Sequence record: LT960552.1
Strand: one strand, 5' to 3'
Length of the DNA: 64,000 bases
The position numbers and the translations under genes were made by a program. The notes beneath the pieces are model-generated. The model was not told the origin of the DNA. It did no database searches and was given only the letters and a program-made list of their open reading frames with translations. Shown here one piece after another: positions 1 to 63,633 of this stretch. Numbering within the stretch: position 1 is the stretch's first letter; each line of letters begins with the position of its first letter.

Positions 1-1299
1 GCATCCGTAATTGGAACAAACTTAAATATTGTATTCCCAACTTCTGGTGGTGGCGGTAGCACCGCAATTCCTGGATTGTTTACATCTTCACCTCCAGGAA
101 GTATAATGCAATATTCATTAATTTCTGGACAAAGTGTTTCATCAATTCGTGAACAACTTAGTGGTGAATCTGGTGGTCAAGCTGGTCGTGACGGAAGTTC
201 ATCTTCACCTTTTGTAACAAAAACTGGTTGGTGTTTTGGTGATGGGTTGTATTGGACATGGAATGGTGAAGGTGGATCTATAACAAAATTAGTTCCTAAT
301 TTAAACCAAAATGCATATCTTAAAGGAATTACAACAACTGGAATTACAAAAACTGATGCAACTATAGCAGGTTCTGGTAGTATAAGTTCAACTTCAATAA
401 CTGCACCACAACATTATCATGGGACTGGTATGATGTTGGGGTTATCTGGTCAAGTTGCTGATGATGCTATGTTCATAAGTAATAGAGTATGGAATGATGG
501 AATTCAATACCAAGGTGTTCAAATAACAGGTGATGTTCAAAGTAGAGTTGTAGGAAATGTAAATGGTTCGGATTCAAGAACAGCATTAAGTACCACATTG
601 GCTATATATACAGGTTCTGACACAACATCCCATACACATACATTAACTAACAACGATGTTGCACATTTTAATGTTGCAATGGTATATAATATTGCTGAAC
701 CAAGTTTAGCACTTAATCAAACTGCTGGTGATGCTAGATATGTACTTAAAGCTGGTGATATAATGACAGGTTCATTAACTATTGCTAACTCTGCAACAAT
801 ATCTACCAATGATACTAGTAATATATTATGGTTTAGAAACGCAGCAGGTCTAGAACGTGCGGCTATATATCATAATTCAACAACTAATACACTTAGATTA
901 AGAAGTAATGGTGGTAATGAAGTTACTATTAATCAGGTAGGAAATTTAACTGCACCTACCTTGACAGTAACTGGTGTTGCAGCAACAGGGCCATTAACAG
1001 TAACTGGTAGAATAGTAGCATCTGACGATATATGGGCGTTTTCTGATATTAGATTGAAAGAAAATATGATTCCTATTGATAGTGCACTTGATAAATTGGA
1101 AAAAATTACTGGATATATTGGTAATATGATAGGTGAAGATACTAAACGTTCTATGGTAAGTGCACAAGAACTTCAACAAGTATTACCTGAAGCGGTAAGT
1201 ACTAAAGATGAGTATTTGACAGTTAACTATTCTGCTATTATACCTCTATTAATTCAAAGTATTAACGAATTAAGAGAAGAAGTAAGGAGTAAAAAATAA
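1..1299 (+). CDS. Tail fibre protein, 5'-truncated, with C-terminal peptidase S74-type intramolecular chaperone
   Basis: Frame 1 is open from base 1, so the gene starts upstream. The body is Gly/Thr/Ser-rich and has a fibre motif (ARYVLKAGDIMTGSL). The C-terminus has AFS|DIRLKEN...ALDKLEKITGY...SAQELQQVLPEAV...VNYSAIIPLLIQSINEL. Confidence 0.85.
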   Translation, partial: ASVIGTNLNIVFPTSGGGGSTAIPGLFTSSPPGSIMQYSLISGQSVSSIREQLSGESGGQAGRDGSSSSPFVTKTGWCFGDGLYWTWNGEGGSITKLVPNLNQNAYLKGITTTGITKTDATIAGSGSISSTSITAPQHYHGTGMMLGLSGQVADDAMFISNRVWNDGIQYQGVQITGDVQSRVVGNVNGSDSRTALSTTLAIYTGSDTTSHTHTLTNNDVAHFNVAMVYNIAEPSLALNQTAGDARYVLKAGDIMTGSLTIANSATISTNDTSNILWFRNAAGLERAAIYHNSTTNTLRLRSNGGNEVTINQVGNLTAPTLTVTGVAATGPLTVTGRIVASDDIWAFSDIRLKENMIPIDSALDKLEKITGYIGNMIGEDTKRSMVSAQELQQVLPEAVSTKDEYLTVNYSAIIPLLIQSINELREEVRSKK

Positions 1300-1865
1300 T
1301 GGCAATACCTTGTACTGGCACAATAAAAGCTTCTGATATAAATGTCGAGTTGGGACGTCCAACAAATGGTACATTTAAAATTGGAAGTCCAGATGAACGT
1401 GCATTAGCAGGTAAACCATCTGGTTTAATTAAATTTAGTGATTTTTATTGTAAATCTGCCGCAGATCCATTACCTTGGAATGCATTCTCTTTACAAACAA
1501 TTGGTGGTCGCCCTATTAGTGGTGGTGTAGCACAATTATGGAACATTGATGGTAGTACTATTGGTATATGGGGTGGTTCTGTTGGGTTAATAAAATTCAA
1601 TAATCATTTTTTACGTCCAATAACACAAGTAACGTTCCAAACTTATTATCAAAATACAAATGCATGGCATACTGTATTTGTTTATGAAAGAACTAACACT
1701 GGTTCACAAGTAGCTTTAGGAAATTATGTTGGATTACAAACTTTCACGTTAAATGTTAATGTTCCTGCTGGTCAAGAGTTATGGTTTACTCTTTATGGTG
1801 GCGGTGACCAAGGAGATGCAAACTTAATGGATCTCTTTAGAATAACAAATGTGGTATATGCATAA
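1299..1865 (+). CDS. Tail fibre-associated adhesin-like protein (gp38-type N-terminal attachment motif)
   Basis: N-terminus MAIPCTGTIKASDINVELG...ALAGKPSGLIKFSDFYCKS is typical of proteins that cap fibre tips; overlaps the fibre stop codon. Confidence 0.55.
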   Translation: MAIPCTGTIKASDINVELGRPTNGTFKIGSPDERALAGKPSGLIKFSDFYCKSAADPLPWNAFSLQTIGGRPISGGVAQLWNIDGSTIGIWGGSVGLIKFNNHFLRPITQVTFQTYYQNTNAWHTVFVYERTNTGSQVALGNYVGLQTFTLNVNVPAGQELWFTLYGGGDQGDANLMDLFRITNVVYA

Positions 1866-1877
1866 TAAAAAGATTTT

Positions 1878-1906
1878 TGGAACAGGAAAAAATGTTCTGG
1901 TATAAT
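1878..1906 (+). promoter_or_regulatory. TGRAAY-class extended -10 promoter
   Basis: TGGAAC-N17-TATAAT with TGG before the -10. Confidence 0.75.
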
Positions 1907-1910
1907 AGAG

Positions 1911-1942
1911 GCATCCTAATGAGAAGTTAGGGTGCTTTTTTT
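1911..1942 (+). terminator. Intrinsic terminator overlapping the predicted transcription start
   Basis: GCATCCTAA-N7-TTAGGGTGC followed by T7. Confidence 0.6.
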
Positions 1943-1958
1943 ATACATGGAGAACCAT

Positions 1959-2261
1959 ATGAGCAAGAAAACTGAATCTAAGATCGAAGCACATGATTTA
2001 AATGATGTACAACGTAAAAAATTGAAAGATGGTTTAAATTCCGCAGTAGTTCAACTGTCTCACCTAGATACTCTTAAAGAATCATATGCTGATTTTATGG
2101 ATACTTTAGCAGATGAAATTGGTCTTGACAAGGGTAAATTGAAAACAGCAGCAATGCGTATCTATAAACAAGATTTCTTTGATAAAGTACGTGCACAAGA
2201 TGAAGTAGAAACAATTTTAACCGTATCTGGTAATTTATCAACACCAATGGATGATGAATAA
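1959..2261 (+). CDS. DsbA-like double-stranded DNA-binding protein
   Basis: GGAG plus ATG at 1959. LADEIGLDKGKLKTAAMRIYKQDF...DEVETIL resembles T4 DsbA in size and pattern. Confidence 0.5.
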   Translation: MSKKTESKIEAHDLNDVQRKKLKDGLNSAVVQLSHLDTLKESYADFMDTLADEIGLDKGKLKTAAMRIYKQDFFDKVRAQDEVETILTVSGNLSTPMDDE

Positions 2262-2266
2262 AAAAA

Positions 2267-2296
2267 TAATGCCTCAATGATGAGGCATTAACTTTT
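2267..2296 (+). terminator. Hairpin/terminator
   Basis: TAATGCCTCA-ATGA-TGAGGCATTA, then ACTTTT. Confidence 0.55.
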
Positions 2297-2322
2297 AAGT
2301 ACGTGAATTATAAGGAGATAAG

Positions 2323-5300
2323 ATGTATATAGATGGATATATGGAACGAAAGAGGACAAAAGAAGTCCTTCACGTGGCTGAACGTGTTAATGGTAAACGT
2401 ATTTTGCGAGAAATTGAACCTGTTTATGAGTATTTTGTAGAATCTCCATCAGGAACATTCAAAACTATCAATGGTACTATGGCTGAAAAGTTTGAATTTA
2501 CTAGACATCATGAAATGAAGCAAACTATGGAGAAATTACCTAGTACTGCAAAGATTTATGAATCTGATTGTAATGTTACATTTAAAACTTTAGCAAAACA
2601 CTATATGGGTAAGCCATCTCCAGATTTAAATATAGTATTTTTCGATATCGAAACTGATTTTCATCCAAAATTTGGATATGCATCTCCAAGTGATCCTTTC
2701 AACCGAGTAACTGCAATTTCTTTATATCAAAGCTGGACAGGAAAGGACTATGTTCTTACAATGGCACCTTCTGATATGGATAATGTAGAAGCACAAGATA
2801 TTATCAACCGTTTGAACCACGAAACTAATGACCCTAACAGTACTGTATTGTTATATACAGATGAAGCTGAAATGTTTTCGGATTTTTTCGATTTGATTGA
2901 AGATTCTGACATTTTATCAGGATGGAATAGTGAATTTTATGATATTCCTTATATGGTTAATAGAACTCGTAAGATATTCAACGAAGCGACTTTAGCTAGA
3001 TGGTGCTTGTGGAATCGAAAGCCAAATGCTCGTGAAGCTGATATGTTTGGTAAAACTATTGTAACATATGACCTAGTTGGTCGTGTACACTTAGATTATC
3101 TTTCATTATATAAGAAACATGCTGGTCAAGTAGAACAATCTTATAAATTGGACTATATTGCTGAAAAAGTAACTGGTGAAAACAAAGTTTCATATGATGG
3201 TTCATTGGATAAGTTGTATCGAGAAGATTACTTAACGTTTTTACGTTATTCTAAACAAGATAGTATTCTATTAAAGAAAATAGATGATAAAATGGACTTC
3301 ATCAATCTACATAACCGATTGGCTCATAAAGAATGTGTACTTATTAGTACTACAATGGGTTCAGTGGCATTGATTGATACTGCTATCATTAATCTATCTC
3401 ATAAACGTGGTGAAGTAGTATTCAATAAACGAAAACTTGATGATGAAGATGAAAGTTATGATTATCAAGAATATGAAGATTATGATGATGAGGATGAAGA
3501 CGACGAACCAAAAGCAGGATCGAAAGCCGCAGGTGCATGGGTACAAGATCCAGTACTTGGATTAATTGACTTCTTGGGTTGTATTGACTTTAACTCATTA
3601 TATCCAACAGTATTACGTGCGTTAGGTATGAGTACTGAATGTATTCTTGGACAATTGCGTCAAACATATACTGATGCATATCTTGCTGAACGTATTGATG
3701 AACAACGAATGAAATTCCGTGGAAGAGGTAAATTTGAACCTAAATGGACTGAAGCATGGCATGGTTTATTTGCTAGTGTTGAATTTACAATGGTTCGTGA
3801 GAAATCAGACGATATTATCACTGTAGATTTGGAAGATGGTTCATCATTCCAAGCATCTGGTGCAGAATTATATGATATTATATTTGGTGAAGATAGTACT
3901 ATAGTATTAAGTGCTAATGGTACATTGTTTGATAAAACCAAGTATGGTGTAATTCCTGAAATTCTTACTATTTGGTATTCTGAACGTAAAGCTCAGCAAA
4001 AAATGGTAATCGATTACAAACATCTTGCAACGGATGGTTGGGAATTAGCAAGTGAAATTGTTTCTGAATTAGAAGAAGCATTAAAATTATTACAATATGG
4101 TAATAGTTTGCATAAAACGAACTTACATGAAGACGACCCTGTATATCTTATTAGATTAGCATTGGGATCTGGTGATATAAGTTCAGCAGCTAAGATCATT
4201 GCTGATAATGGTATGCGTTTTGAAGGTGGTAAGTTGTATTCACCTGAAGAAGATAAAAAGTACTGTAAAGTTCAATCATCTTTCTGGAAACAGAATCAAC
4301 AAATCCGTAAAATTTTGTTAAACTCACTATATGGTGCGTTATTGAACAAAGGTTCTAGATTCTTTGATAAGAGATTAGGTCAATCAGTAACTTTAACGGG
4401 TCGTAGTATGACTAAACACCTTGCAAGTAAGATTAATGAAGTATGTACTGAAAATTATGATCATGGTGGTGGTGTAGTTGTATATGGTGATACCGATTCT
4501 GTGTATTTTAGTGTAGCACATTATTATAAAGAGAATGATATTTCATTTGATTTATCTAAAGAAGAAGTAATTGAGCTATATCAAATGATTGGTGATACAG
4601 TAGGTTCATCATTCCCATCATTTATGGATGAAACCTTTAATACTGGTATAGATAATGGTAAAATTGTAGGGGCTGATCTGGAAATGGTAGGTTCTCGTGG
4701 TCTATTTTTGAAAAAGAAACGCTATGCTATACTAAAATATTGGGAAGATGGTTTCCGTTTAGATGTTGAAGGTAAACCTGGAAAAGTTAAAGCAATGGGT
4801 CTTGAAATTAAACGTTCAGATACACCAAAATACATTCAAAATTTCTTAGAAGACACATTAACATCATTGCTTGTTGGGTCAGAAGAAGATGTATTACGTG
4901 CGAAAGTTCGTGAATTCAAAAAGCTATTCAAAGATCGTCCTTCATATGAGAAAGGTCAACCTAAAACCGTTAAAAATTATTCTAATAAATTTAAAGAATA
5001 TGAAGAAACTGGTAAATGTAGAGTTGGACATGTTCTTGCAGCAATACAATGGAACAAATTACGTACTATATATGATGATATGACTGTTCCAGAAGCAACT
5101 GATGGAACTAAAGTTATAGTTTGTAAGTTAAAACCAAATCCATATGGTATTACATCGGTTGGCTATCCTATTGACTGTACCGAATATCTACCAGAATGGT
5201 TTTTATCATTACCATTTGATGACGATGATATGGAAAAAGCAGTACTAACTAAAAAATTAGGAAATATATTTGGTATTTTGGATATGGACTTGGCTATTGA

Positions 5301-5349
5301 TGAAAAAAGTTCAATTGAATTGAATACTGGTTTCCTAGAGTGGATATAA
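2323..5349 (+). CDS. gp43: Family B DNA polymerase (T4 gp43-like)
   Basis: Exonuclease motifs FFDIETD, GWNSEFYDIPY and YKLDYIA; polymerase motifs DFNSLYP, KILLNSLYG, YGDTDS, KKRYA and GLEIKRSD. Confidence 0.97.
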   Translation: MYIDGYMERKRTKEVLHVAERVNGKRILREIEPVYEYFVESPSGTFKTINGTMAEKFEFTRHHEMKQTMEKLPSTAKIYESDCNVTFKTLAKHYMGKPSPDLNIVFFDIETDFHPKFGYASPSDPFNRVTAISLYQSWTGKDYVLTMAPSDMDNVEAQDIINRLNHETNDPNSTVLLYTDEAEMFSDFFDLIEDSDILSGWNSEFYDIPYMVNRTRKIFNEATLARWCLWNRKPNAREADMFGKTIVTYDLVGRVHLDYLSLYKKHAGQVEQSYKLDYIAEKVTGENKVSYDGSLDKLYREDYLTFLRYSKQDSILLKKIDDKMDFINLHNRLAHKECVLISTTMGSVALIDTAIINLSHKRGEVVFNKRKLDDEDESYDYQEYEDYDDEDEDDEPKAGSKAAGAWVQDPVLGLIDFLGCIDFNSLYPTVLRALGMSTECILGQLRQTYTDAYLAERIDEQRMKFRGRGKFEPKWTEAWHGLFASVEFTMVREKSDDIITVDLEDGSSFQASGAELYDIIFGEDSTIVLSANGTLFDKTKYGVIPEILTIWYSERKAQQKMVIDYKHLATDGWELASEIVSELEEALKLLQYGNSLHKTNLHEDDPVYLIRLALGSGDISSAAKIIADNGMRFEGGKLYSPEEDKKYCKVQSSFWKQNQQIRKILLNSLYGALLNKGSRFFDKRLGQSVTLTGRSMTKHLASKINEVCTENYDHGGGVVVYGDTDSVYFSVAHYYKENDISFDLSKEEVIELYQMIGDTVGSSFPSFMDETFNTGIDNGKIVGADLEMVGSRGLFLKKKRYAILKYWEDGFRLDVEGKPGKVKAMGLEIKRSDTPKYIQNFLEDTLTSLLVGSEEDVLRAKVREFKKLFKDRPSYEKGQPKTVKNYSNKFKEYEETGKCRVGHVLAAIQWNKLRTIYDDMTVPEATDGTKVIVCKLKPNPYGITSVGYPIDCTEYLPEWFLSLPFDDDDMEKAVLTKKLGNIFGILDMDLAIDEKSSIELNTGFLEWI

Positions 5350-5360
5350 AAGGAAAATAT

Positions 5361-5813
5361 ATGAATAACTATGACAATCTTTTTCAAAGAATTGGAGAAG
5401 CATTAACTTCTGGTGGTGAATATAACATTATTCGTGCTAATGATGATAATGAAATTGCCATTTTGAATAATGCTGGATTTGTACAAATCGGATCTATGAA
5501 AGATGGAGACACTATAGTGTCTCTATTTAAAATTGAGTTAAAAGCAAAAGAAGTTATTAAAATAGTAGAAGTACCTACTAAACTATCACCACCTTGGAAT
5601 AATTCTCCAATTGATCGTCAACCATTTTGGGATAATTCACCAAATGACCGTCAACCTTACATAACAAATACTCCACATATAATGTATAGTACTGGAACTG
5701 GTGATACATCAGAATGGATGTATAAAAAATACAACAATTCTGTAGATCTTACTTTATCAACAGAACTATACAAATTAGCAACTCTTAAAGCACCTAAACA
5801 TAATAATACTTAA
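5361..5813 (+). CDS. Hypothetical protein with an 11-aa imperfect tandem repeat
   Basis: AAGGA RBS before ATG 5361; WNNSPIDRQP / WDNSPNDRQP. Confidence 0.6.
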   Translation: MNNYDNLFQRIGEALTSGGEYNIIRANDDNEIAILNNAGFVQIGSMKDGDTIVSLFKIELKAKEVIKIVEVPTKLSPPWNNSPIDRQPFWDNSPNDRQPYITNTPHIMYSTGTGDTSEWMYKKYNNSVDLTLSTELYKLATLKAPKHNNT

Positions 5814-5819
5814 AATTTT

Positions 5820-5848
5820 TGAAACGTATACAATTAATCTGGTATAAT
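5820..5848 (+). promoter_or_regulatory. TGRAAY-class extended -10 promoter
   Basis: TGAAAC-N17-TATAAT with TGG. Confidence 0.75.
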
Positions 5849-5879
5849 TGTATACGTTAACAACATGGAGAATTAACAA

Positions 5880-6611
5880 ATGGAATTACGTGACGTACTA
5901 CGCGACCTAGTAACTACAACTGCTGGAATTGATTTTGATTGTATCGCTATTTCTAGTGAAGATCGGGGTCAAGGTCAACGAATTTATATGGAAGCATATA
6001 CTGGCGATAAAAACTTAGTTATGAGAGCATATACTAAGGAAGATGTACCTGAAGTTGTTGGGCGTTTTGGTATTGGTAATCTTGGAATGCTTCAAGGTCT
6101 ATTAAATCTAAATGTTTACAAATCAGAAAGTACTAAAATAAGTGTGAATGCAAAAGATGGTATTGTAAAAAGTCTTTCATTTGCTTCAGACGATGCAAAC
6201 ACCAACTATCTAGTAGTTGCAGAAAAATTTATTCCACCTCAACCACGTTTCACTGACAAACCATATGACGTACAGGTTACACCTAGTGCTTCAAAAGTCA
6301 ATGAGCTAAAAAGCTTCTCAGGAGTGTTTAAATCATTCACTGCTCACGTTACTCCCTTTACTGAGAACGGAAGTTTGTATTTTTACGTAGGTGAGAAGAA
6401 TAAAAATAACCATACAGGTACATTATTATTCTCTAAAACAGATGGTGAGTTATCTCAAGGTTATGGCTATCCTATTGAACGTGTTCTACAAGCATTGAAC
6501 CGCGTATCCAATGCTGAACAAAAATCAATTGGGATTACCAAAACTGGTATGTTTAATGTAACAGTAGATACTGGTATTGCAGTTTATAGCATCTATGTAA
6601 GTGGTTGCTAA
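5880..6611 (+). CDS. Probable DNA polymerase sliding clamp (gp45-like)
   Basis: 243 aa with an alternating alpha/beta pattern and GRFGIGNLGMLQGLL; follows the polymerase. Inferred from size and pattern. Confidence 0.5.
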   Translation: MELRDVLRDLVTTTAGIDFDCIAISSEDRGQGQRIYMEAYTGDKNLVMRAYTKEDVPEVVGRFGIGNLGMLQGLLNLNVYKSESTKISVNAKDGIVKSLSFASDDANTNYLVVAEKFIPPQPRFTDKPYDVQVTPSASKVNELKSFSGVFKSFTAHVTPFTENGSLYFYVGEKNKNNHTGTLLFSKTDGELSQGYGYPIERVLQALNRVSNAEQKSIGITKTGMFNVTVDTGIAVYSIYVSGC

Positions 6612-6619
6612 TATTTTAC

Positions 6620-6642
6620 ATGGGGGTTTATCCCCCATTTTT
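6620..6642 (+). terminator. Intrinsic terminator
   Basis: ATGGGGG-TTTAT-CCCCCAT followed by a T run. Confidence 0.6.
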
Positions 6643-6655
6643 ATTGGAAAAAATA

Positions 6656-7270
6656 ATGAGTACCCCAAGATTTATTGCTGATACCCATATGGGTCATAGA
6701 AATATATGGAAATTTAGACCAGTTTTTGAAAGTACCTTACATAACGATTTGTATTTTCAATATGTACTGGCTGAAATTTGTACAAAACGAGATTCAATGT
6801 TCTTTTTAGGTGATATTCTTTTTGATGAAAAATACTTACCATTTATTAAAGAATTACCTGGTACTAAAATTTTAGTACTTGGAAATCATTGTACTGAATA
6901 TATTAGTACTAAAAAATTATGTGATGCATTTGATGAAGTTCATTCAATGATTCGATATAAAGAATTTTGGCTAACTCATGCTCCTATACATCCAGATGAA
7001 TTACGTGAAAAGAAAAATATTCATGGACATGTTCACACTGAATCTATAAATGATTTTAATTATTTAAATGTATCAGTAGATAGTTCATTTATGAATTTTT
7101 TACCTAAGACATTACTAGAAGTTAGACAGGCATTTGCTACAGTAAATACAGAGCAAAAGATTTATGCTGGTGTTGATAATGAAAATGCACTTAATGTTAT
7201 AGAGAGTAATCCTATTTCAAAAAATGCATATTATAGATCACTTGCTGAGTCAAGAAAAATAACTGTCTAA
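6656..7270 (+). CDS. Calcineurin-like metallophosphoesterase
   Basis: Motifs DTHMGH, LGDI, GNH, HAPIH and HGHVH. Confidence 0.88.
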   Translation: MSTPRFIADTHMGHRNIWKFRPVFESTLHNDLYFQYVLAEICTKRDSMFFLGDILFDEKYLPFIKELPGTKILVLGNHCTEYISTKKLCDAFDEVHSMIRYKEFWLTHAPIHPDELREKKNIHGHVHTESINDFNYLNVSVDSSFMNFLPKTLLEVRQAFATVNTEQKIYAGVDNENALNVIESNPISKNAYYRSLAESRKITV

Positions 7271-7279
7271 GGAGTAGAT

Positions 7280-7489: not shown

Positions 7490-7508
7490 AGTTGATTGGA
7501 GTTAATAC

Positions 7509-8543: not shown

Positions 8544-8556
8544 CGTTTTTATAATA

Positions 8557-11729: not shown

Positions 11730-11753
11730 AAGTACTACATTGTAGTACTTTTT
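11730..11753 (+). terminator. Terminator whose stem is built from two AGTACT sites
   Basis: AAGTACTAC-ATT-GTAGTACTT-TTT. Confidence 0.65.
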
Positions 11754-11764
11754 AAGGAAGATGT

Positions 11765-22574: not shown

Positions 22575-23277
22575 AGGGGCTGCAAAAGCCCCTATTTTTA
22601 AATGTAGGTTTTGTGATAAAGAATTCAAACGTGAAAGTACATTAATAACTCATGTTTGCATTAAACGTGATCGATATAATGATCGTGAATCAAGACCAAT
22701 GCGTGAAGCATATCGTTTATATATGATGTTTATGGAAGCTCATAGACTAGCAATGAAAAAGTCAGAAGAACCACTGATGCAATTTATCAAATCTAGATAT
22801 TTTAATGATTTCTTTGATTTTGGTCAATATATTTTATCACATGATATTCTAAATAAAGAACAATTCATTAAGTACATTTTAACTAGTGGGAAACCCGTAT
22901 TTGAATGGAAATCTCATAAAGTACTTGAAGAATGGGTTATAAAATGTATTAGAGAAGAACACCCTCGTAGAGCAATAGAACGTTCTATCAATGCGTTGGT
23001 AGAATGGGGTAATGTTACAGATAACGATTGGGTTGATTTTTTTGATAATGTAAGTACTGAACGAGCAATTATGTGGTTAGAAACAGGTAAAATTTCTCCG
23101 TGGTTAATATATATTGCAGATCCAGCTAGTGGAAACAAATTGTTAAATCGGTTTGGTGATTCAGATTTAGATTATCTTGTTCGTTTTATTGACCCAACAT
23201 ACTTTAAAATACTTCAAATACGTTATAGTGATGAAGTAAATGAAATACGAAGTTTATTAACAGAGGCTGGGCTATGA
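22558..23277 (+). CDS. Hypothetical protein with an N-terminal C2HC zinc finger
   Basis: FKCRFCDKEFKRESTLITHVC. Confidence 0.7.
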   Translation: MAKTTKGAAKAPIFKCRFCDKEFKRESTLITHVCIKRDRYNDRESRPMREAYRLYMMFMEAHRLAMKKSEEPLMQFIKSRYFNDFFDFGQYILSHDILNKEQFIKYILTSGKPVFEWKSHKVLEEWVIKCIREEHPRRAIERSINALVEWGNVTDNDWVDFFDNVSTERAIMWLETGKISPWLIYIADPASGNKLLNRFGDSDLDYLVRFIDPTYFKILQIRYSDEVNEIRSLLTEAGL

Positions 23278-23624
23278 AAAGTAAAATATACAGTGAACAA
23301 GAATTAACTACAGAAGAATTAGCTAAAAAAGAAGAATTGAAAGAAGATAGCAAACAACTATCAATTTTAAGACAAGGTTCTGTAACAGAAATTACAATGA
23401 GCGGGAAAACGTTTCAGGTTTCCGACCCTAAACGAATTGAACATGCAATTATAATTTTAGAACGACATGAAGAAGTCCTATTTACGTTAAGGCAACGTAT
23501 CAAAGAACAAACTCAATCTATTAATATTTTGCTAAATGAAATTGAGAAATTGAAATCTGATGTTCAGAGATTGAAAGAGGAAAGTAATAATGGATTTGGA
23601 TCACAAGAGTACACAAACTATTAA
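23274..23624 (+). CDS. Coiled-coil hypothetical protein
   Basis: ATGA overlap with the upstream stop; heptad-rich C-terminus. Confidence 0.65.
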   Translation: MKSKIYSEQELTTEELAKKEELKEDSKQLSILRQGSVTEITMSGKTFQVSDPKRIEHAIIILERHEEVLFTLRQRIKEQTQSINILLNEIEKLKSDVQRLKEESNNGFGSQEYTNY

Positions 23625-24240
23625 TTATAGAAAGGCAAGAACTGATATTGACATTGATTTTAAAGATGGAAAATCAGTTATTGAACAACTTCCTTGTACT
23701 AGAAGTGTTGAAAAAATCACAGAAGATGGTTTGATTCCACACAATAGTGGTATACATTTTGATAATATCCCAACTGACCCAATTTCTGGATTAGCATCTA
23801 TACCATATAAAGAAGCCGAAAGGTTAGGATATCAAAAAGTTGATATTTTATCTCAATCGGCTTATGTACATGTGCGTGATAGAAATCATCTTAAAGAATT
23901 GATGAATAAAGAACCAGATTGGAATTTATTATTGGTTCCTGAAATAGTAGATCAATTGTCTCAAATTAAGAAACATATAACTTTGTTGAATATATGGAAA
24001 CCTAGTAGTATCGATGAATTAGCAATGTTTATTGCAATGATACGTCCAGGTAAACGTCAATGTCAAAGTATGAATAGTTGGGACGAAGTTCGGGCTGTTA
24101 TTTGGGAGTATGATAGTATTGGACTCGATGCAGAAGGTAAAAAGTTAAGATACTTTAAAAAACCTCATGCATTCGCATATAGTTTGATGATAGTAGTTCA
24201 GTTAAATGCATTAGTAGAATATATTATTTCCTCTTCTTAA
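23590..24240 (+). CDS. DnaE (Pol III alpha)-like catalytic palm fragment, C-half
   Basis: RTDIDIDF, HNSG, GYQKVDIL, PSSIDELAMFIAMIRPG and YFKKPHAFAY are collinear with DnaE PDFDVDF, HAGG, GLVKFDFL, ALFRPG and FNKSHSAAY. Confidence 0.85.
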   Translation: MDLDHKSTQTINYRKARTDIDIDFKDGKSVIEQLPCTRSVEKITEDGLIPHNSGIHFDNIPTDPISGLASIPYKEAERLGYQKVDILSQSAYVHVRDRNHLKELMNKEPDWNLLLVPEIVDQLSQIKKHITLLNIWKPSSIDELAMFIAMIRPGKRQCQSMNSWDEVRAVIWEYDSIGLDAEGKKLRYFKKPHAFAYSLMIVVQLNALVEYIISSS

Positions 24241-24577
24241 GAGCAATATTTCTACGTTTAATTCGTTTCGTTGGCAGATCACTTAAAGAGATTACTGGAC
24301 CTGAAATAACTTTCACATGGTCAGTATTAAAACGTTTTGTATAGTTTTCGAATTTTTCCATTTCCTCTTGCATAAAAAGGCAAATAGGAATAGTTCTATT
24401 ACTTTGCCACCACCAATTATTGGCTAAAAGTAGCAATTCTTCTTGTAAGGATTCATCCATCTCATGGAAACAGTACAAAGTTATGTATTGTTTACTTTTG
24501 ATTTTGATTATCCCATAGTAGATTACATCGTCGTGCTCTATGACCGTCACGAACGGATAAGTTTTGTGTTCATTCAT
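24224..24577 (-). CDS. Conserved hypothetical protein
   Basis: WWWQSNRTIPI motif; GGA RBS; TATAAATA upstream on the minus strand. Confidence 0.7.
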   Translation of the reverse strand: MNEHKTYPFVTVIEHDDVIYYGIIKIKSKQYITLYCFHEMDESLQEELLLLANNWWWQSNRTIPICLFMQEEMEKFENYTKRFNTDHVKVISGPVISLSDLPTKRIKRRNIALKKRK

Positions 24578-24587
24578 ATGACTTCCA

Positions 24588-24626
24588 TAAATATTGTATA
24601 AAATGATAAATTATATATTATTTATA
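24588..24626. promoter_or_regulatory. Face-to-face pair of late promoters
   Basis: TAAATA on + at 24588-24593 and TATAAATA on - at 24619-24626. Confidence 0.55.
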
Positions 24627-24637
24627 GAGGTTAAAAC

Positions 24638-25609
24638 ATGGCACATTACGGCGTATATATGTATCCTTATAACAATGAAGTTTCTCTTGGCAATTTTAAT
24701 ATGCCTTTCAATAATGAGAAATTAACAATTTATAGAGGTGCAAACAATCCTATCAGTTTTACAATACATAATGCTGATGGAAAATACACATTGATTAGTG
24801 ATAATCAATATCTTGTATTCAGCATTTATGATGCTAGAAATGATACAAGAATATTTGAAGTACTTCTTGAAAAGATTTTACCTTCATGGTTATCAGAAGC
24901 TGGTCAAGCAAGACCAACCATTAGCAATAAACAAAAAGTCTATTATGGATGTATTGTTCCTGCTGGTGTTTTACAAGATTTAAGTGTAGGATCAAAGTAT
25001 CGTTGGAGTATTACTAAAGTTACCATGAATGGTGATTTAATAGAACCAACTGAATACTTATACACTGGATTAAATTTTGAGGCAAGTTCTGAATTAATTT
25101 TAAGTAACTTAGCATCACCAACATTCACACCTAGTCAAGAAATTAGTGCAAATAGAAATCCATCTTGGTTACCAATAAAGGACAAAGAACAAAAACCTAT
25201 AAGTAATGGGATTTTTGGGGATTATGATGTTATGCATTCTTCAGCATTACGTGCAGAAGCACAATATGGTTTAGTTGACGGTTTAAGTACTGCTGCATTC
25301 TATTTTCATAATTTTATTGGAAGGGTACAACTTCAAGGTTGTTTGTCAAATGAGACTCCAAAAGACGCAGAGGATTATAAATGGTTCATCATTAAATTGG
25401 ATGGAAAAGAATTTATAGACAATCCTACTGATCCAAATGGTATTCCTATTCCAATGGATGGTATTAGAGCATTTAATTTCCACGGTCAACTTATGTGGGT
25501 TCGTGTAGTATGTTGTATACCACCAATTATTAAAAATTATCCACCGAACATAATCAAAAAAGATTATAATCCGTTGAATACTATTCCAAAAATCTTGATC
25601 CGTAGATAA
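24638..25609 (+). CDS. Probable virion structural protein (baseplate/neck-type beta-sandwich)
   Basis: Late promoter, GAGG RBS, beta-rich sequence. Confidence 0.5.
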   Translation: MAHYGVYMYPYNNEVSLGNFNMPFNNEKLTIYRGANNPISFTIHNADGKYTLISDNQYLVFSIYDARNDTRIFEVLLEKILPSWLSEAGQARPTISNKQKVYYGCIVPAGVLQDLSVGSKYRWSITKVTMNGDLIEPTEYLYTGLNFEASSELILSNLASPTFTPSQEISANRNPSWLPIKDKEQKPISNGIFGDYDVMHSSALRAEAQYGLVDGLSTAAFYFHNFIGRVQLQGCLSNETPKDAEDYKWFIIKLDGKEFIDNPTDPNGIPIPMDGIRAFNFHGQLMWVRVVCCIPPIIKNYPPNIIKKDYNPLNTIPKILIRR

Positions 25610-31716: not shown

Positions 31717-32052
31717 ATGAGGTTCAATCAGATAACCGAAGATGCACCTGGTAAAGATATACGGAATATGATTAGTACTATTGCATTATCATTAATTGCA
31801 ACAGGTAGAGAACAAATTAGTATACAATCATTGATTAATGAAATAAAAAAGCGTACTAATATTGATGTTCCATATAATGTAATGATGGATATTCTTAATG
31901 AACTTCCATTTGTACAAGATGCAAATTCTGATATGGTAAACTTACAAGGTACTGATACTTCACCTGATGGTGATAGTATTGAATCACCTGAAGAACAAGT
32001 AACTGATATGGCAACAAAAGCAGCATCTGCAAATTTAAAACAAGATATTTGA
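31717..32052 (+). CDS. Hypothetical head-associated protein
   Basis: N-terminus MRFNQITED resembles capsid-targeting leaders. Confidence 0.5.
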   Translation: MRFNQITEDAPGKDIRNMISTIALSLIATGREQISIQSLINEIKKRTNIDVPYNVMMDILNELPFVQDANSDMVNLQGTDTSPDGDSIESPEEQVTDMATKAASANLKQDI

Positions 32053-32078
32053 AACAAACGAAAAACATGTGCTATAAT
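32050..32078 (+). promoter_or_regulatory. TGRAAY-class extended -10 promoter
   Basis: TGAAAC-N17-TATAAT with TGTGC. Confidence 0.75.
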
Positions 32079-32092
32079 ATAGGAGTACAAGG

Positions 32093-32794
32093 ATGTACAT
32101 TCCACCTATCGTTAATAAGTACACGTATGTTGGTTATAATCGAATCGAAGGCGGCCCGCAAGGTCGCCTTTATTCTACCCCTAGTGGAAACCTACCATCC
32201 GTGACTACAATTTTAAGTGCCACTTCTGATAATGAAGGATTAAAGAAATGGCGTGAAGCAATCGGAGAAGAAAAAGCTAATGCAATAACATTAGAAGCTA
32301 CTACAGTTGGGACTTTCATGCATGAAAATCTAGAACGAAGACTCGTTGGAGATCCCGATCATCATGGTGGTATGCCAATAAGGGTATTAGCTAGAAGTAT
32401 GGCTGATTGTATACAGGAAAATGCTTGGCCTAAAATAAATGAAGTATGGGGACAAGAAGTTCCATTATTTTATGAAGGATTATGGGCTGGAACTACTGAC
32501 TTAGTTGGTATACATGATGGTATACCGTCAATTATGGATTATAAAAATTCACGTAAACCCAAAACATGGGAATATATTGAAAATTACAGACTTCAATTGG
32601 CAGCTTATGCAATAGCACATAATGCAATGTTCGGTACAGAAATCGATAGAGGTGTTATTTTTATTTGTGTTCGCAAAGACCCTCAAAACTTACAATATCA
32701 GGAATTTGTTATTGAAGGTACTGATTTTGAAGAAGCGAAACAAATGTGGATTGAAAGAGTAGAGCAATTCTATGCTCAACGTGGAGATATGTAA
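32093..32794 (+). CDS. PD-(D/E)XK exonuclease (lambda-exonuclease/Cas4-like fold)
   Basis: PSVTTIL, GTFMH, EVPL...GTTDL...IMDYKNS and QLAAY. Confidence 0.85.
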   Translation: MYIPPIVNKYTYVGYNRIEGGPQGRLYSTPSGNLPSVTTILSATSDNEGLKKWREAIGEEKANAITLEATTVGTFMHENLERRLVGDPDHHGGMPIRVLARSMADCIQENAWPKINEVWGQEVPLFYEGLWAGTTDLVGIHDGIPSIMDYKNSRKPKTWEYIENYRLQLAAYAIAHNAMFGTEIDRGVIFICVRKDPQNLQYQEFVIEGTDFEEAKQMWIERVEQFYAQRGDM

Positions 32795-32797
32795 AAA

Positions 32798-33352
32798 ATG
32801 GGAACAAGAGCAATGAAACAAGATTTATTCGCTATTAAAGCAGTAAAAGCAAAAGGTTATGATATTCAAGAACTGATTCTTCGTTCAGATGAAGAACTAG
32901 ATGAATTAAAATTACCAAACAAACTTATTCAAGCAGTAAAAGAATATAAGCAACGTGGTGGTAAATCACCTGAACAAATTGCTGAAGAAATTGCTGAAAT
33001 TATGATACAAGAAAGTGCAGCAGTTGAACAAACTACGTCATTAGATGAAACTGTTAATGAATATAAAACCAATACTGAAGAACAACAAAAAGTTATAGAA
33101 GAAATTCAAAATACTGTTGTAATTCCTGATGACGAAATTCAAATTGTACGTACTGAAAGTTCACAAGAAGATGTTGATATTATTAACGCTGCATTAAAAG
33201 AACGTGATTTTAAATCATTCGCACCGTACTTAAAACATTTGAAATCATCCGTTCCAGCACAAATTCTATCAGCAGTTGATGGAGCTAAAGTTAATGAACT
33301 TATTGAGAACCGAATTTCAGAGATTAAAGCACAAGGTGAAAGTACTAAATAA
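32798..33352 (+). CDS. Hypothetical acidic helical protein
   Basis: 184-aa ORF. Confidence 0.65.
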   Translation: MGTRAMKQDLFAIKAVKAKGYDIQELILRSDEELDELKLPNKLIQAVKEYKQRGGKSPEQIAEEIAEIMIQESAAVEQTTSLDETVNEYKTNTEEQQKVIEEIQNTVVIPDDEIQIVRTESSQEDVDIINAALKERDFKSFAPYLKHLKSSVPAQILSAVDGAKVNELIENRISEIKAQGESTK

Positions 33353-62120: not shown

Positions 62121-62914
62121 TGAAAATATATAATATGTTAATTGCACTACATGAAAGTACTAAAACACCTTTACATCAATACGGTAATGTTGGTTTAAGT
62201 AAGAGATTATATGTAAGAACTTACGAAATCAATAGAATTGGTAAAAATTATGATAACATCAATCGTAGTGATGTTGGTACTGAACTGGTTTTAAAAGCAT
62301 ATTTGGCTCGTAAAGTTTATATTAATGAACAATACCTACGAGGTAGGTTTTTAATTGATGAACTATATGAGAAAGAAGTTCAGTTCACTAATGGTTTATG
62401 GAGAATATTCTCAGTTGAAGTCTTTGGGGAATTGCTACCTGAACTACCTGTGCCGACAACATACAAAGAATTACAACATATTTTTGATCATAGTGATGTA
62501 TATAAAGAGTTCAACTTATATACTACAGTTAAAGAAGCAGTTATTCATAATCAAATAGCAGATTCAGACAAATGCGTCAGTATGCGAGATTTTGATTTAT
62601 TTTGCTCATTACCAGGTAGTACTGGTTGGACTTCAATACAACATGGTGCAAGTTTAGTTGATGGTAGAACTGAAGCTCCACAACGATTATTACAAGCATG
62701 TATGGGTATGTACCGATATGAGTTTATAGGTTGCCCTGAACCGTATGAAAATTTTTGGAAAGAACGTGCTTCACTAGCAATGAAAAAAGCTATTGCAATT
62801 TTAGAAAAATCATATATAATAAAATTTAGAAATGGAACGATGTACGGCATGACGCCAGTACCGGAACGATTTGAGCCAATATCGTCCTTCCATTGGAACA
62901 TAAAAAGGACGTGA
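62120..62914 (+). CDS. Hypothetical protein
   Basis: Coupled 264-aa ORF; leader MKIYNMLIALHES. Confidence 0.65.
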   Translation: MKIYNMLIALHESTKTPLHQYGNVGLSKRLYVRTYEINRIGKNYDNINRSDVGTELVLKAYLARKVYINEQYLRGRFLIDELYEKEVQFTNGLWRIFSVEVFGELLPELPVPTTYKELQHIFDHSDVYKEFNLYTTVKEAVIHNQIADSDKCVSMRDFDLFCSLPGSTGWTSIQHGASLVDGRTEAPQRLLQACMGMYRYEFIGCPEPYENFWKERASLAMKKAIAILEKSYIIKFRNGTMYGMTPVPERFEPISSFHWNIKRT

Positions 62915-62934
62915 ATTTATTTTCGTCCTTTTTT
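62902..62934. terminator. Terminator (AAGGACG family)
   Basis: AAAAAGGACG-N12-CGTCCTTTTTT. Confidence 0.7.
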
Positions 62935-62943
62935 ATTTTCTAC

Positions 62944-62972
62944 TTGACAACTGTGTATTTTAAGCGTAACAT
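62944..62972 (+). promoter_or_regulatory. Sigma70 promoter, distal of a tandem pair
   Basis: TTGACA-N17-TAACAT. Confidence 0.55.
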
Positions 62973-63004
62973 GTATCACATGAACACAGCGTATCAAAAA
63001 GTAC

Positions 63005-63033
63005 TTGACAACATGCTGAGTCCAATATATAAT
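63005..63033 (+). promoter_or_regulatory. Perfect-consensus sigma70 (early) promoter
   Basis: TTGACA-N17-TATAAT. Confidence 0.9.
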
Positions 63034-63066
63034 ATTTAGAGACAAAACATCCAAAAGGAAAAAACA

Positions 63067-63633
63067 ATGAAAACTGTAACTTTCGTATACACCCAAGGTA
63101 TTTCTTATAAAGCAACCAACGTTAATGAAATTAACTCTGATGGGTACACAGTAGATTATACTCGTCAGGTACAAAACGAATCTGGTACAGTTGTAGGGGG
63201 CGATTTTCGTTCAGTCAGTACTGAAGATTTGTTGTATGCTATTGTAAAAGACCATAGTACTGGTATTGTATCAATCATTCCTGGTATCTATGATAATTTT
63301 GATGTGGTGCCTAAAGGTAATGCAGTAACTCGTCAAGAAAACATCGATCGTGAAGCTGAAGACGTTGCTTATGCTCGTGCACTAAAAGCACCAGAACGTG
63401 CAGCAAAAGAACAAGCTAAATTCGAAGCTCGTCGTTTAGCACGTAAAGCAGCATGGGAAGCTAATAATGGGACTACTGAACCAACAGTACCAGTTGAGCG
63501 TTTTCAAACTGCTATTGATACACGAGTAACTCAAAAAGTTTCTGCACTCAGTTCTGCTGTTGAGCAATTGATTTCGGCTGGTGTGTCTGAATCTGATATC
63601 GAAGTACTTAAATCATTAAATGTATTAAAATAA
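63067..63633 (+). CDS. Probable early protein, hypothetical
   Basis: AAGGA RBS downstream of the consensus promoter. Confidence 0.75.
   Translation: MKTVTFVYTQGISYKATNVNEINSDGYTVDYTRQVQNESGTVVGGDFRSVSTEDLLYAIVKDHSTGIVSIIPGIYDNFDVVPKGNAVTRQENIDREAEDVAYARALKAPERAAKEQAKFEARRLARKAAWEANNGTTEPTVPVERFQTAIDTRVTQKVSALSSAVEQLISAGVSESDIEVLKSLNVLK

Follow-up and report, generated by a model that had tools for sequence, protein, structure and literature searches.

AGTACT, an over-represented palindrome of Rak2-like jumbo phages, is kept by selection and very probably serves as a DNA signal

Several short sequences are known that recur throughout a genome. HIP1 (GCGATCGC) is an octamer found in cellular genomes, those of cyanobacteria, where it has been associated with cognate methyltransferases and with a possible repair bias. 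The hexamer AGTACT described herein resembles it as a short, exact palindrome with a genome-wide excess in all frames, conserved across a clade and accompanied by methyltransferase genes in the same genomes; unlike HIP1, it belongs to a lytic phage, lacks the signatures of repair bias and is part of a defined promoter class. The uptake sequences of Haemophilus (USS) and Neisseria (DUS) act as a 'self' tag. They too occur about once per kb or more often, more evenly than random and in several coding frames, and are sometimes paired as terminator stems, as AGTACT is at 11730-11750. However, USS and DUS are asymmetric sequences of 9-12 nt, which competent bacteria recognize with their DNA-uptake machinery, while AGTACT is dyad-symmetric, and we know of no DNA-uptake process for a lytic phage. 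Chi (GCTGGTGG) of E. coli is likewise an over-represented oligomer by which a DNA-processing enzyme recognizes self DNA, and its difference in density between self and foreign DNA is important; Chi is asymmetric, orientation-biased and read on single strands by RecBCD, in contrast to the palindromic AGTACT with its symmetric flanks.

Two phage systems come close in other respects. The stoperators and operators of cluster A mycobacteriophages (L5 gp71, Bxb1 gp69) are early-promoter operator sites that are also scattered genome-wide. Stoperators are asymmetric 13-bp sites of temperate phages; a 50-kb genome has about 30 of them, for the most part between genes and aligned with the direction of transcription, whereas AGTACT amounts to some 1000 palindromic copies, mostly in genes, in a lytic jumbo phage, with a putative reader. 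SPO1 TF1 and phi29 p6 are phage-encoded genome-coating proteins with preferred sites near ends or early promoters, and they help to switch off early transcription, as in the model proposed below for AGTACT. TF1 recognizes hmU-containing DNA and p6 bendability; neither recognizes an exact hexamer, in which they differ from that model.

The window analyzed here comprises 64,000 nucleotides (bases 186001-250000; GC 32.1%) of Yersinia phage fHe-Yen9-03, a Rak2-like jumbo myovirus. An initial annotation, made from the letters alone, had estimated about 125 copies of AGTACT where 20-25 would be expected at a GC content near 30%; the exact count is 129, the last copy lying at 63603-63608, and a mononucleotide model predicts 21.1. 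A literature search found no published description of this abundance. Dinucleotide-preserving shuffles yielded 15.5±3.7 copies (maximum 25; 0 of 100 reached 129), and Markov models of order 2 and 3 predicted 26.9 and 58.7, with AGTACT still the top hexamer at order 3 (z 9.2). At order 4 (106.7 expected) it is no longer an outlier, since the signal is by then contained in the pentamers AGTAC and GTACT. Against synonymous-codon shuffling of the genes (31.1±5.1, maximum 49, vs 126 observed) it ranks first among 4096 hexamers (z 16.9). The excess had been expected to disappear under an amino-acid- or dicodon-preserving null if it were an artefact, yet it also persists in a dicodon-preserving Euler shuffle. 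The construction of this shuffle leaves frame 0 unchanged at 63, but frame 2 holds 53 copies vs 31.8±3.6 and frame 1 holds 10 vs 5.3±1.8. Enrichment, 8-17-fold in each reading frame as well as in non-coding DNA, is a property of the exact hexamer and not of its variants; all 18 one-mismatch neighbors are close to their expected counts. The excess is therefore real and exceptional, and is no codon or dipeptide artefact.

Table 1. Coordinates of AGTACT features in the window (strand in parentheses; a dot denotes no strand).
Feature	Position	Remarks
AGTACT set	1198..63608 (.)	129 exact sites, mean spacing 488 bp; first site at 1198
GTA-CTT (Val-Leu) example	3552	coordinate check
AGT-ACT (Ser-Thr), frame-0 example	3895..3900 (+)	in DNA polymerase gene g259
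AAG-TAC-T (Lys-Tyr), frame-1 example	4259..4264 (+)	two minority codons
Further AAG-TAC-T (Lys-Tyr) examples	15976, 50873, 54469	coordinate check
Terminator-like hairpin	11730..11754 (+)	3' of g270; AGTACT at 11731 and 11744 in the stem arms
Longest site-free stretch	23059..24858 (.)	flanking sites 1806 bp apart
Second-longest site-free stretch	31780..33340 (.)	flanking sites 1567 bp apart
Early-type sigma70 promoter	63000..63033 (+)	-35 at 63005-63010, -10 at 63025-63033 (annotated); upstream of g336

Within genes, 63 of the 126 copies read AGT-ACT, 53 xxA-GTA-CTx and 10 xAG-TAC-Txx; three more are intergenic. The earlier claim of occurrence in all three frames thus stands, each being enriched, although the last frame contributes only 10 sites. 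All cited examples (Table 1) agree with their codon readings, and the codons of the Lys-Tyr sites, described as minority ones, do account for just 16% (AAG, of Lys) and 18% (TAC, of Tyr) of usage; sites of this type number 10 vs 1.3 expected. AGT-ACT encodes 63 of the 118 Ser-Thr dipeptides, while TCT-ACT occurs once vs about 15 expected from codon usage.

Ser-Thr is itself the most over-represented dipeptide in the window (118 vs 82), and AGTACT is denser in intergenic DNA and in small early genes under weak constraint. Both would fit a non-adaptive by-product, either of biased mutation, repair or gene conversion in the style of HIP1 or very-short-patch repair, or of a codon-pair or dipeptide preference. 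Conservation among relatives speaks otherwise. Copies of AGTACT keep their position at a frequency of 0.77 from Yen9 to BF (0.43 for average hexamers) and of 0.55 from Yen9 to CBB (0.26). As the initial annotation had suggested examining, silent positions are more conserved within the hexamer than in the same codons elsewhere, both for GTA (0.91 vs 0.66, p=0.001) and for ACT (0.83 vs 0.58, p=0.005). Ancestral copies were retained at 0.76-0.86, compared with 0.61-0.71 for all ancestral hexamers. AGTACT is therefore under purifying selection, silent positions included. Gains from conserved one-off neighbors show no excess (7 observed vs 10.9 expected), nor are neighbors depleted (AGTATT 55 vs 57 expected, AATACT 48 vs 43), which argues that selection, rather than biased repair, maintains the hexamer. 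Of the two causes initially offered, positive selection or a biased mutational process, retention and silent sites favor the former, and neighbors and gains speak against the latter. The HIP1-like version of that bias is accordingly unsupported: the neighbors it would consume are undepleted, and gains are not in excess. Since losses are suppressed while gains lie at or below neutral expectation, since silent positions are extra-conserved, since all three frames and non-coding DNA are enriched and amino-acid- and dicodon-preserving nulls are survived, and since two fixed promoter placements (see below) are kept while spacers diverge, a by-product is very improbable.

The initial annotation had set the excess against the usual avoidance of 6-bp palindromes by phages, and this contrast holds. 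CTGCAG (the YenI/PstI site), CAGCTG, GGTACC, CCATGG and other 6-bp palindromes are absent from the window, and CTGCAG, CAGCTG, GGTACC and CGTACG from the entire 357-kb genome of BF, a phage of the same genus. Other palindromes at zero in fHe-Yen9-03 and BF are the textbook pattern of restriction-site avoidance; AGTACT is the opposite, being the single most frequent hexamer of BF by raw count (1072 vs 98 expected), with at least five copies in every 5-kb bin.

AGTACT is the rank-1 hexamer in BF, CBB, GAP32, RaK2 and 121Q. It is depleted in the compared stretches of PA5oct (1 vs 7.8 expected) and XacN1 (0 vs 4.0), and neutral in T4 (3 vs 4.3), T5 (5 vs 5.7) and a 50-kb sample of E. coli (3 copies, one per ~17 kb). 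The enrichment is thus a trait of one clade, the Rak2-like phages of ~350 kb, which infect seven host genera. Each genome carries about 1000 copies, one per 0.3-0.5 kb, a density 30-100 times that of the E. coli sample.

Some of these copies are part of promoters. In the immediate-early promoters of the left genome end, the -35 and -10 elements are flanked by two AGTACT, which lie 20-21 bp from each other. The consensus, aAAAAGTAC-TTGCAA-N9-10-(G/C)AGTACT(T/G)TATAAT, is conserved in fHe-Yen9-03, BF, CBB and RaK2 with a variable spacer sequence, and the pattern is confined to ~350-kb Rak2-like contigs plus two shorter IMG/VR contigs. Early promoters with AGTACT occur in the left-end early region, with a single addition at 63000, the sole promoter of early type in the window. 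There, as first noted, the hexamer (63000-63005) adjoins a sigma70-type -35 element, whose upstream edge it overlaps (aaaaAGTAC-TTGACA-N17-ATATAA, the last overlapping TATAAT). Its BF orthologue at 248.7 kb is the only promoter beyond the left-end early region in which AGTAC abuts the -35 element. Middle-type (TGAAACG) and late-type (TATAAATA) promoters are without AGTACT. Duplication of promoter cassettes could account for part of the promoter copies. Taken together, the clade-wide excess, selection at silent sites and the promoter copies make it very likely that AGTACT is a working DNA signal, read by a putative phage protein.

The flanking bases, measured within coding DNA, are informative about such a reader. 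In BF, position -1 holds A, C, G and T at.37,.28,.09 and.26, and position +6, given as its reverse complement, at.36,.28,.06 and.29; RaK2 prefers TnC-AGTACT-GnA, on both sides. Preferences with two-fold symmetry indicate a symmetric (dimeric) factor that recognizes the site in double-stranded DNA. The preferences differ by phage, C/G in RaK2 and 121Q and A/C in BF, and this difference among genera suggests a co-evolving, phage-encoded reader. The same variation, between phages on closely related hosts, counts against a site for a conserved protein of the Enterobacterales, which would be recruited, for example to boost immediate-early promoters at a time when phage proteins are still absent, or titrated off the host chromosome. 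Such a protein would suit the confinement of the enrichment to Enterobacterales phages and its absence in Pseudomonas and Xanthomonas relatives; moreover, immediate-early promoters must run on host factors only, and they bear AGTACT. But the unrelated coliphages T4 and T5 are not enriched, and to our knowledge no enterobacterial protein has AGTACT specificity. The site of SlmA (GTGAGTACTCAC) shares the core, but carries the disfavored flanks, G at -1 and C at +6. A host reader is thus quite improbable.

The spacing of AGTACT is somewhat more even than random, as proposed for checking, with modest regularity: the coefficient of variation (CV) is 0.74 in the window (random 0.99±0.08) and 0.89 in BF (1.01±0.04), the lowest among the 60 commonest hexamers. 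In BF, gaps below 100 bp and above 1 kb are both scarcer than random, and no periodicity was found. The longest site-free stretch in the window, shorter than the largest gap in 97.6% of random placements, spans the end of g283, g284, g285, g286c and the start of g287; its initial extent of 23060-25280 had to be corrected, as a copy at 24859 interrupts it. The gap at 31780-33340 was confirmed and spans g297 to g299, including the PD-(D/E)XK nuclease gene g298. Density is 2-3-fold higher at the left, early-gene end (4.6/kb in the first 50 kb and 5-7.6/kb in the first 20 kb of fHe-Yen9-03, vs 2.0/kb in the window), which corresponds to a 22-kb terminal repeat in CBB (6.4/kb); gene class is a confounder of this gradient, the early genes being small and fast-evolving and the core genes conserved.

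Coverage-like spacing with few very short or long gaps and no periodicity, a density peak at what are physical DNA ends in CBB, and the 30-100-fold contrast with E. coli are what would be expected if every stretch of phage DNA needed a nearby AGTACT for a processive enzyme. The hexamer might act like Chi, though independently of orientation, as a 'stop degrading' signal to a helicase-nuclease that enters at DNA ends, or it might be the preferred start or cleavage site of a phage primase or type II topoisomerase (A/GTAC/T, 4-nt stagger). The window does encode a primase, a gp41-type helicase, both topoisomerase II subunits, UvsW, Dda and the PD-(D/E)XK nuclease. Known Chi and primase sites, however, are asymmetric and read on single strands, unlike the dyad-symmetric core and flanks of AGTACT. 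True E. coli-type Chi is enriched in BF, 10-14-fold over a dinucleotide model, with six copies of one orientation in the left-end early region, so that RecBCD seems to be handled separately. With the two fixed promoter copies left unexplained and the related jumbo phages PA5oct and XacN1 depleted, not enriched, in the stretches compared, this explanation is unlikely.

Our preferred reading, with a probability of roughly 45%, is that AGTACT is a duplex site for a symmetric, phage-encoded factor, serving both as an early-promoter operator and as a genome-wide mark. In this reading, selection keeps the site dense and fairly even in Rak2-like jumbo phages for a reader with the strict hexamer specificity of a Type II enzyme; the reader could be a binding protein, possibly coupled to a phage DNA methyltransferase. 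The paired immediate-early sites would form an operator through which these promoters are switched off or retuned once the factor is made, and the other ~1000 copies per genome a dense mark by which it may coat or recognize phage DNA as distinct from that of the host. The specific roles named in the initial annotation, a site for a nucleoid or packaging protein, a methyltransferase target, or a landmark of recombination or replication, are candidate functions. Against the preferred reading, over 90% of sites are solitary hexamers in genes, without promoter context, where a tight binder could obstruct transcription and replication, and it is restriction-modification enzymes, not classical repressors, that typically recognize one exact 6-bp sequence.

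Such specificity would also suit a mark without a separate binder: a phage methyltransferase would methylate AGTACT, protect the ~1000 sites from ScaI-type restriction and tune the immediate-early promoters, where fully methylated infecting DNA would behave unlike freshly replicated DNA. Strict 6-bp palindromes are the classic targets of Type II methyltransferases, adenine methylation tunes promoters such as those of IS10 and dnaA, and the promoter copies of AGTACT lie where it does so. Candidate genes are present, namely g056 in fHe-Yen9-03 and its counterpart BF_0063 (Dam family, PF05869), BF_0151 (PF01555) and BF_0129, a short ORF that resembles adenine methylases but matches no Pfam family significantly. 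PF05869 is best known for GATC, which weakens the case, and close homologues of BF_0151 are limited to Eneladusvirus, so that high-identity conservation of this enzyme does not extend to the whole clade. RaK2 DNA has been reported as methylated and resistant to many restriction enzymes (PMC3622015), and a giant virus has an orphan methyltransferase apparently aimed at AGTACT (PMC7253447). Nevertheless, protection accounts for tolerance of the sites, not for an 8-17-fold excess, purifying selection and even spacing, and methylation alone is a rather doubtful explanation.

One pair of sites outside promoters forms the stem of a terminator-like hairpin, as proposed initially for 11730-11750. The hairpin has a 9-bp stem (AAGUACUAC/GUAGUACUU) followed by UUUU, with a folding energy of -9 kcal/mol (z -2.9 vs shuffles).

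The ScaI-site palindrome AGTACT occurs 129 times in the window, which is identical to bases 186001–250000 of the 352.6-kb Rak2-like jumbo myovirus fHe-Yen9-03 of Yersinia (Yen9-03, genus Eneladusvirus; LT960552.1) and is 95.8% coding, with genes chiefly on the plus strand (DNA polymerase, terminase, recombination, primase, helicase, ribonucleotide reductase, topoisomerase II and some virion proteins). From base composition, 21 copies are expected; dinucleotide-preserving shuffles give 15.5±3.7 (maximum 25), and Markov models of orders 2 and 3 give 27 and 59, respectively. AGTACT is the top-ranking hexamer at orders 1–3 and is unremarkable only at order 4, because the pentamers AGTAC and GTACT already hold the signal. 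The over-representation claimed in the initial annotation is thus confirmed under every other null model, and the example sites, terminator hairpin and promoter-abutting copy that it cited were all found in the sequence; one of the gaps it described as free of the motif contains a site at 24859.

Synonymous codons were shuffled within each gene, which preserves both proteins and codon usage. The window genes then carried 31±5 copies (maximum 49) against the 126 observed (z=16.9), and the runners-up among hexamers were solely overlapping derivatives of AGTACT. As originally noted, the motif occurs in all three reading frames, and each of them is enriched: AGT-ACT (63 vs 19.8 expected), xxA-GTA-CTx (53 vs 10.0) and xAG-TAC-Txx (10 vs 1.3), although the last, the Lys-Tyr frame, supplies just these ten sites. 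A dicodon-preserving Euler shuffle, which holds the AGT-ACT frame constant by construction, yielded 31.8±3.6 and 5.3±1.8 copies for the second and third frames. Amino-acid-preserving and dicodon-preserving models had been named beforehand as those under which the excess might vanish; it persisted in both. A codon or dipeptide artefact is therefore ruled out by the synonymous, codon-permutation and dicodon-preserving shuffles together with the intergenic enrichment. AGTACT also bends the proteome, influencing which codons are used and even which dipeptides occur: no dipeptide of the window exceeds its expectation as much as Ser-Thr (118 vs 82), and 63 of its 118 occurrences are encoded by AGT-ACT and one by TCT-ACT.

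Avoidance of 6-bp palindromes is a textbook trait of phages, and the window follows it elsewhere. More than 20 other 6-bp palindromes are absent from it, with up to 12–16 copies expected, among them CTGCAG, CAGCTG, GGTACC, CCATGG, GCATGC, TGGCCA, TGCGCA, GGATCC, GTCGAC and CTCGAG; CTGCAG is the YenI/PstI site of Yersinia enterocolitica. Across the whole 357-kb genome of the Serratia relative BF, CTGCAG, CAGCTG, GGTACC and CGTACG are likewise at zero. These absences are classic restriction-site avoidance, which indicates that the Yen9-03/BF lineage is under restriction pressure and makes the behavior of AGTACT exceptional. As a restriction-avoidance target itself, AGTACT was rejected, being not depleted but 8-fold enriched while at least 20 hexamer palindromes are missing.

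AGTACT ranks first among hexamers in every Rak2-like stretch fetched (see table). The complete BF genome holds 1072 copies against 98 expected, with at least five in every 5-kb bin, and AGTACT is its commonest hexamer by raw count. Among more distant jumbo relatives, the motif is depleted in the fetched stretches of Pseudomonas phage PA5oct, which has the same GC content (1 vs 7.8), and of Xanthomonas phage XacN1 (0 vs 4.0); in T4 and T5 it is neutral. These four phages rule out that AT-rich or enterobacterial phages carry the enrichment in general; it is a clade trait of Rak2-like phages, kept in at least four genera. The hosts of the group comprise Escherichia, Klebsiella, Yersinia, Serratia, Erwinia, Pectobacterium and Cronobacter. 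A sample of E. coli K-12 contained 3 copies per 50 kb (0.06/kb against 2–7/kb in the phages), so that the motif is 30–100 times rarer in the sampled E. coli DNA.

The initial annotation had offered positive selection or a HIP1-like biased mutation or repair process as the origin of the excess. AGTACT does resemble HIP1 in that an exact palindrome exceeds Markov and codon-aware expectations by far, throughout the genome and in every reading frame. Very-short-patch or HIP1-type conversion should, however, deplete its precursors and inflate gains, and neither is seen: the 18 one-mismatch neighbors stand at expectation (e.g., AGTATT 55 vs 57), and gains from conserved neighbors number 7 against 10.9 expected. 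The lack of excess gains also argues against strong molecular drive. In 46 kb of the window aligned with BF, CBB (Pectobacterium) and GAP32 (Cronobacter), positional conservation of AGTACT is 0.77 from Yen9-03 to BF and 0.55 to CBB (0.43 and 0.26 for average hexamers), and 31 sites are common to all four phages. On terminal branches, ancestral copies are retained at 0.76–0.86, compared with 0.61–0.71 for all ancestral hexamers. Conservation at synonymous sites, suggested earlier as a check, points the same way: in codons with a conserved amino acid, the silent base is retained more often inside AGTACT than outside (GTA 0.91 vs 0.66, ACT 0.83 vs 0.58, AGT 0.91 vs 0.73). AGTACT is thus maintained by selection and not by mutational bias; the 12–22 lineage-specific sites per phage are turnover at constant density. 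A non-adaptive by-product is disfavored by the data.

The core is strict, and its flanks show a weak but clear two-fold symmetry, also inside coding DNA. In BF, position −1 has A.37, C.28, G.09 and T.26, and position +6, as reverse complement, A.36, C.28, G.06 and T.29. The preference reads H-AGTACT-D in the window and, on both sides, TnC-AGTACT-GnA in RaK2 (Klebsiella) and 121Q (Escherichia). This shift between genera suggests that the protein recognizing the site, here called the reader, co-evolves with the phage. A search for a longer hidden motif around AGTACT in the window and relatives returned the weak symmetric flanks alone. A site for a host protein would be another explanation, and SlmA was considered; its binding site is the 12-bp palindrome GTGAGTACTCAC with required outer GTG/CAC half-site bases. 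It was rejected for flanks contrary to those of AGTACT in the window and BF: the bases least favored there are G at −1 and C at +6 (8/129 and 5/129 in the window; 0.06–0.09 in the flank tally), and GT is not enriched at −3/−2. The symmetry of core and flanks argues against an RNA-level signal, which the position of promoter copies upstream of the transcription start also makes unlikely, and against a single-strand reader.

Regular spacing, proposed earlier as worth checking, holds in part. Copies in the window depart modestly from random placement toward evenness (CV 0.74 vs 0.99±0.08), with a variance/mean of about 0.5 in 1–2 kb bins. The effect is smaller in BF (CV 0.89 vs 1.01±0.04, P=0.001), where AGTACT nevertheless has the lowest CV of the 60 commonest hexamers and where gaps below 100 bp and above 1 kb are too few. 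No periodicity was detected between 80 and 2000 bp, and a periodic arrangement, as for a packaging scaffold, was rejected.

Of the 128 copies in the first 20 kb of Yen9-03, 58 fall between genes (11/kb) and lie inside sigma70-type promoters. The consensus of this immediate-early class is aAAAAGTAC|TTGCAA-N9-10-(G/C)AGTACT(T/G)TATAAT, in which the first AGTACT overlaps the upstream edge of the −35 element and the second, 20–21 bp downstream, stops just before the −10. BF, CBB and RaK2 share this two-copy architecture with divergent spacer sequences. Such promoters, with an A-rich upstream element, number 11–17 per genome in Yen9-03, BF and CBB and drive the small genes of the left end (Yen9-03 1–20 kb, BF 1–25 kb, CBB 1–22456). 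In an IMG/VR scan, the promoter pattern retrieved Rak2-like contigs of about 350–380 kb and two shorter ones of 109 kb and 17 kb. In CBB the region is the terminal repeat, which its authors deduced from doubled read depth, with support from a PFGE genome-size estimate (PMC5259590). The same paper describes the TGAAACG, or 'divergent', promoters upstream of replication genes in CBB and GAP32 (PMC5259590). These middle-type promoters (TGAAACG...TATAAT) lack AGTACT, and 1 of 15 late-type TATAAATA motifs has a copy nearby. The TGAAACG box resembles a Cra/FruR half-site. Copies with promoter context are a minority (about 70/1072 in BF, 4/129 in the window), which rules out that all copies are promoter parts.

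AGTACT counts and densities and the positions of features named in the text
Sequence	Feature	Position	Strand	Observation
Yen9-03	Left end	first 20 kb		AGTACT 5-7.6/kb
Window	Whole window			AGTACT 2.0/kb
BF	Left end	first 25 kb		AGTACT 5-7/kb
BF	Right-hand early-gene region			AGTACT 3-4.6/kb
CBB	Annotated terminal repeat	22,456 bp		AGTACT 6.4/kb
CBB	After terminal repeat	next 22.5 kb		AGTACT 4.4/kb
BF (Serratia)	Stretch			AGTACT 98 observed, 13.5 expected
CBB (Pectobacterium)	Stretch			AGTACT 100 observed, 13.7 expected
GAP32 (Cronobacter)	Stretch			AGTACT 106 observed, 12.1 expected
RaK2 (Klebsiella)	Stretch			AGTACT 189 observed, 11.4 expected
121Q (Escherichia)	Stretch			AGTACT 151 observed, 13.1 expected
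BF	Immediate-early promoters	4.8-16.7 kb		
BF	Immediate-early promoter	248.7 kb		counterpart of window 63000
Window	Middle-type ('divergent') promoters	5820, 15487, 41438		TGAAACG-N17-18-GGTATAAT, without AGTACT
Window	g298	32093-32794	+	PD-(D/E)XK nuclease family, PF12705, E=1.8e-6
Window	g302	36414-37187	+	257-aa ORF, no Pfam match
BF stretch L015	BF_0515	2108-2368	+	DksA/TraR-type zinc finger, PF01258, E=1.5e-9
BF	Chi, left-end early region	6.7, 8.6, 11.4, 16.0, 16.4, 18.0 kb	+	six, same orientation
Window	Chi	16194	+	
Window	Chi	48697	-	

A site that is exact, dyad-symmetric, selected, clade-specific, placed for coverage and built into one promoter class points to a phage-encoded reader that is dimeric and recognizes duplex DNA by its sequence. 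From sequence, candidate types would be a binding protein, a methyltransferase with or without a partner, and a nuclease or nickase. The paired promoter copies would act as an operator that switches the immediate-early promoters, while the roughly 1000 dispersed copies could form a dense mark separating phage from host DNA at a density ratio of 30–100. It is conceivable, at a probability of roughly 0.2, that Rak2-like phages, being without T4-style modified bases, write their 'self' identity into the sequence as a strict palindromic tag every 0.3–0.5 kb, by which a symmetric reader distinguishes phage DNA. Such a phage-encoded reader, possibly with a methyltransferase, would recognize the tag and could use it to control transcription, to protect phage DNA from nucleases, or in the handling of replication and packaging; closing the immediate-early promoters in the terminal repeats would fall to this reader as well. 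If true, the tag would be a sequence-encoded counterpart of the hydroxymethylcytosine of T4 and would correspond, in phages, to genome signatures of the Chi and USS type.

AGTACT shares features with HIP1, USS/DUS, Chi, the operators and stoperators of cluster A mycobacteriophages and genome-coating early repressors such as SPO1 TF1 and phi29 p6, but lacks at least one feature that defines each of them. HIP1 is matched in abundance but not in the signature of biased repair. A signal for a processive enzyme (Chi-like, or for primase or topoisomerase II) is a rival reading: like Chi, AGTACT is over-represented in self relative to host DNA, but Chi is asymmetric, orientation-biased and read on one strand, whereas AGTACT has a palindromic core and dyad-symmetric flanks. 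As with USS/DUS, copies number about one or more per kb and are spaced more evenly than chance would give, a modest effect here; we know of no DNA-uptake or other DNA-selecting machinery for an AGTACT self tag. Operators and stoperators likewise overlap core elements of early promoters, as does the copy at window 63000, but their dispersed copies are intergenic and oriented with transcription, whereas 126 of the 129 window copies lie inside genes and have no orientation.

A pure methylation mark at AGTACT is a further rival reading. BF carries three methyltransferase-like genes: BF_0063, a PF05869 Dam-type enzyme and counterpart of Yen9-03 g056; BF_0151, of PF01555 type; and BF_0129, a short ORF without significant Pfam match. 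Close homologues of the PF01555 enzyme were limited to Eneladusvirus in tblastn across phages. Pfam and NCBIfam typing of the three and their neighbors assigned families but no specificity, and neither tblastn across phages nor a large homologue search of the methyltransferases returned a specificity name. A few candidate small proteins, out of about 550 genes, were scanned against Pfam and gave no DNA-binding fold. Among the early genes of BF, the small zinc-finger protein BF_0515 may bind the secondary channel of RNA polymerase and take part in host takeover. The g298 gene, whose CBB counterpart is annotated as 'restriction endonuclease type II-like', sits within one of the two longest AGTACT-free stretches. 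The g302 ORF lies between two ribonucleotide reductase subunit genes in Yen9-03, CBB and GAP32 and is missing from the corresponding place in BF; a mobile or homing-type insertion is one possibility.

The motif was undescribed in the literature searched on phage AGTACT, CAGTACTG and AGTACT methyltransferase, in the RaK2 and CBB genome papers, and in a jumbo-phage review. We rate AGTACT as a selected genomic signature oligonucleotide. The finding runs against the palindrome-avoidance rule, is directly testable, and points to a system by which giant phages of a widespread group read DNA; some of these phages are under consideration for therapy or biocontrol. With a single hexamer, a promoter class that is well defined and a clade boundary that is clear, experiments have a handle for finding the reader, for studying the switching of immediate-early genes in terminal repeats, and for asking how its own DNA and that of its host are told apart by a phage whose bases are ordinary. 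AGTACT is also a simple diagnostic signature for the Rak2-like clade in metagenomes.

Several minor observations concern other oligonucleotides. BF holds 18 copies of E. coli-type Chi (GCTGGTGG) on its plus strand and 12 on its minus strand (1.8 and 0.9 expected in a dinucleotide model), and genuine Chi may serve the phage against RecBCD that enters from a genome end. Moderate enrichments, much weaker than that of AGTACT in Yen9-03, were seen at 100–125 kb for GATATC in XacN1 (19 vs 4.0) and CTGCAG in PA5oct (9 vs 2.1), under a null that is not codon-aware. The lowest hexamers under the synonymous null in the window genes are TATTTA (14 vs 52) and TAAATA (29 vs 64.5), a scarcity that fits avoidance of late-promoter-like TATAAATA inside genes. 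CTGGTG (47 vs 23), ACTGGT and TGGTGA are over-represented under the same null, mostly at window 1–20000, in varied contexts, some of which overlap AGTACTGGT and some of which resemble the Chi core.
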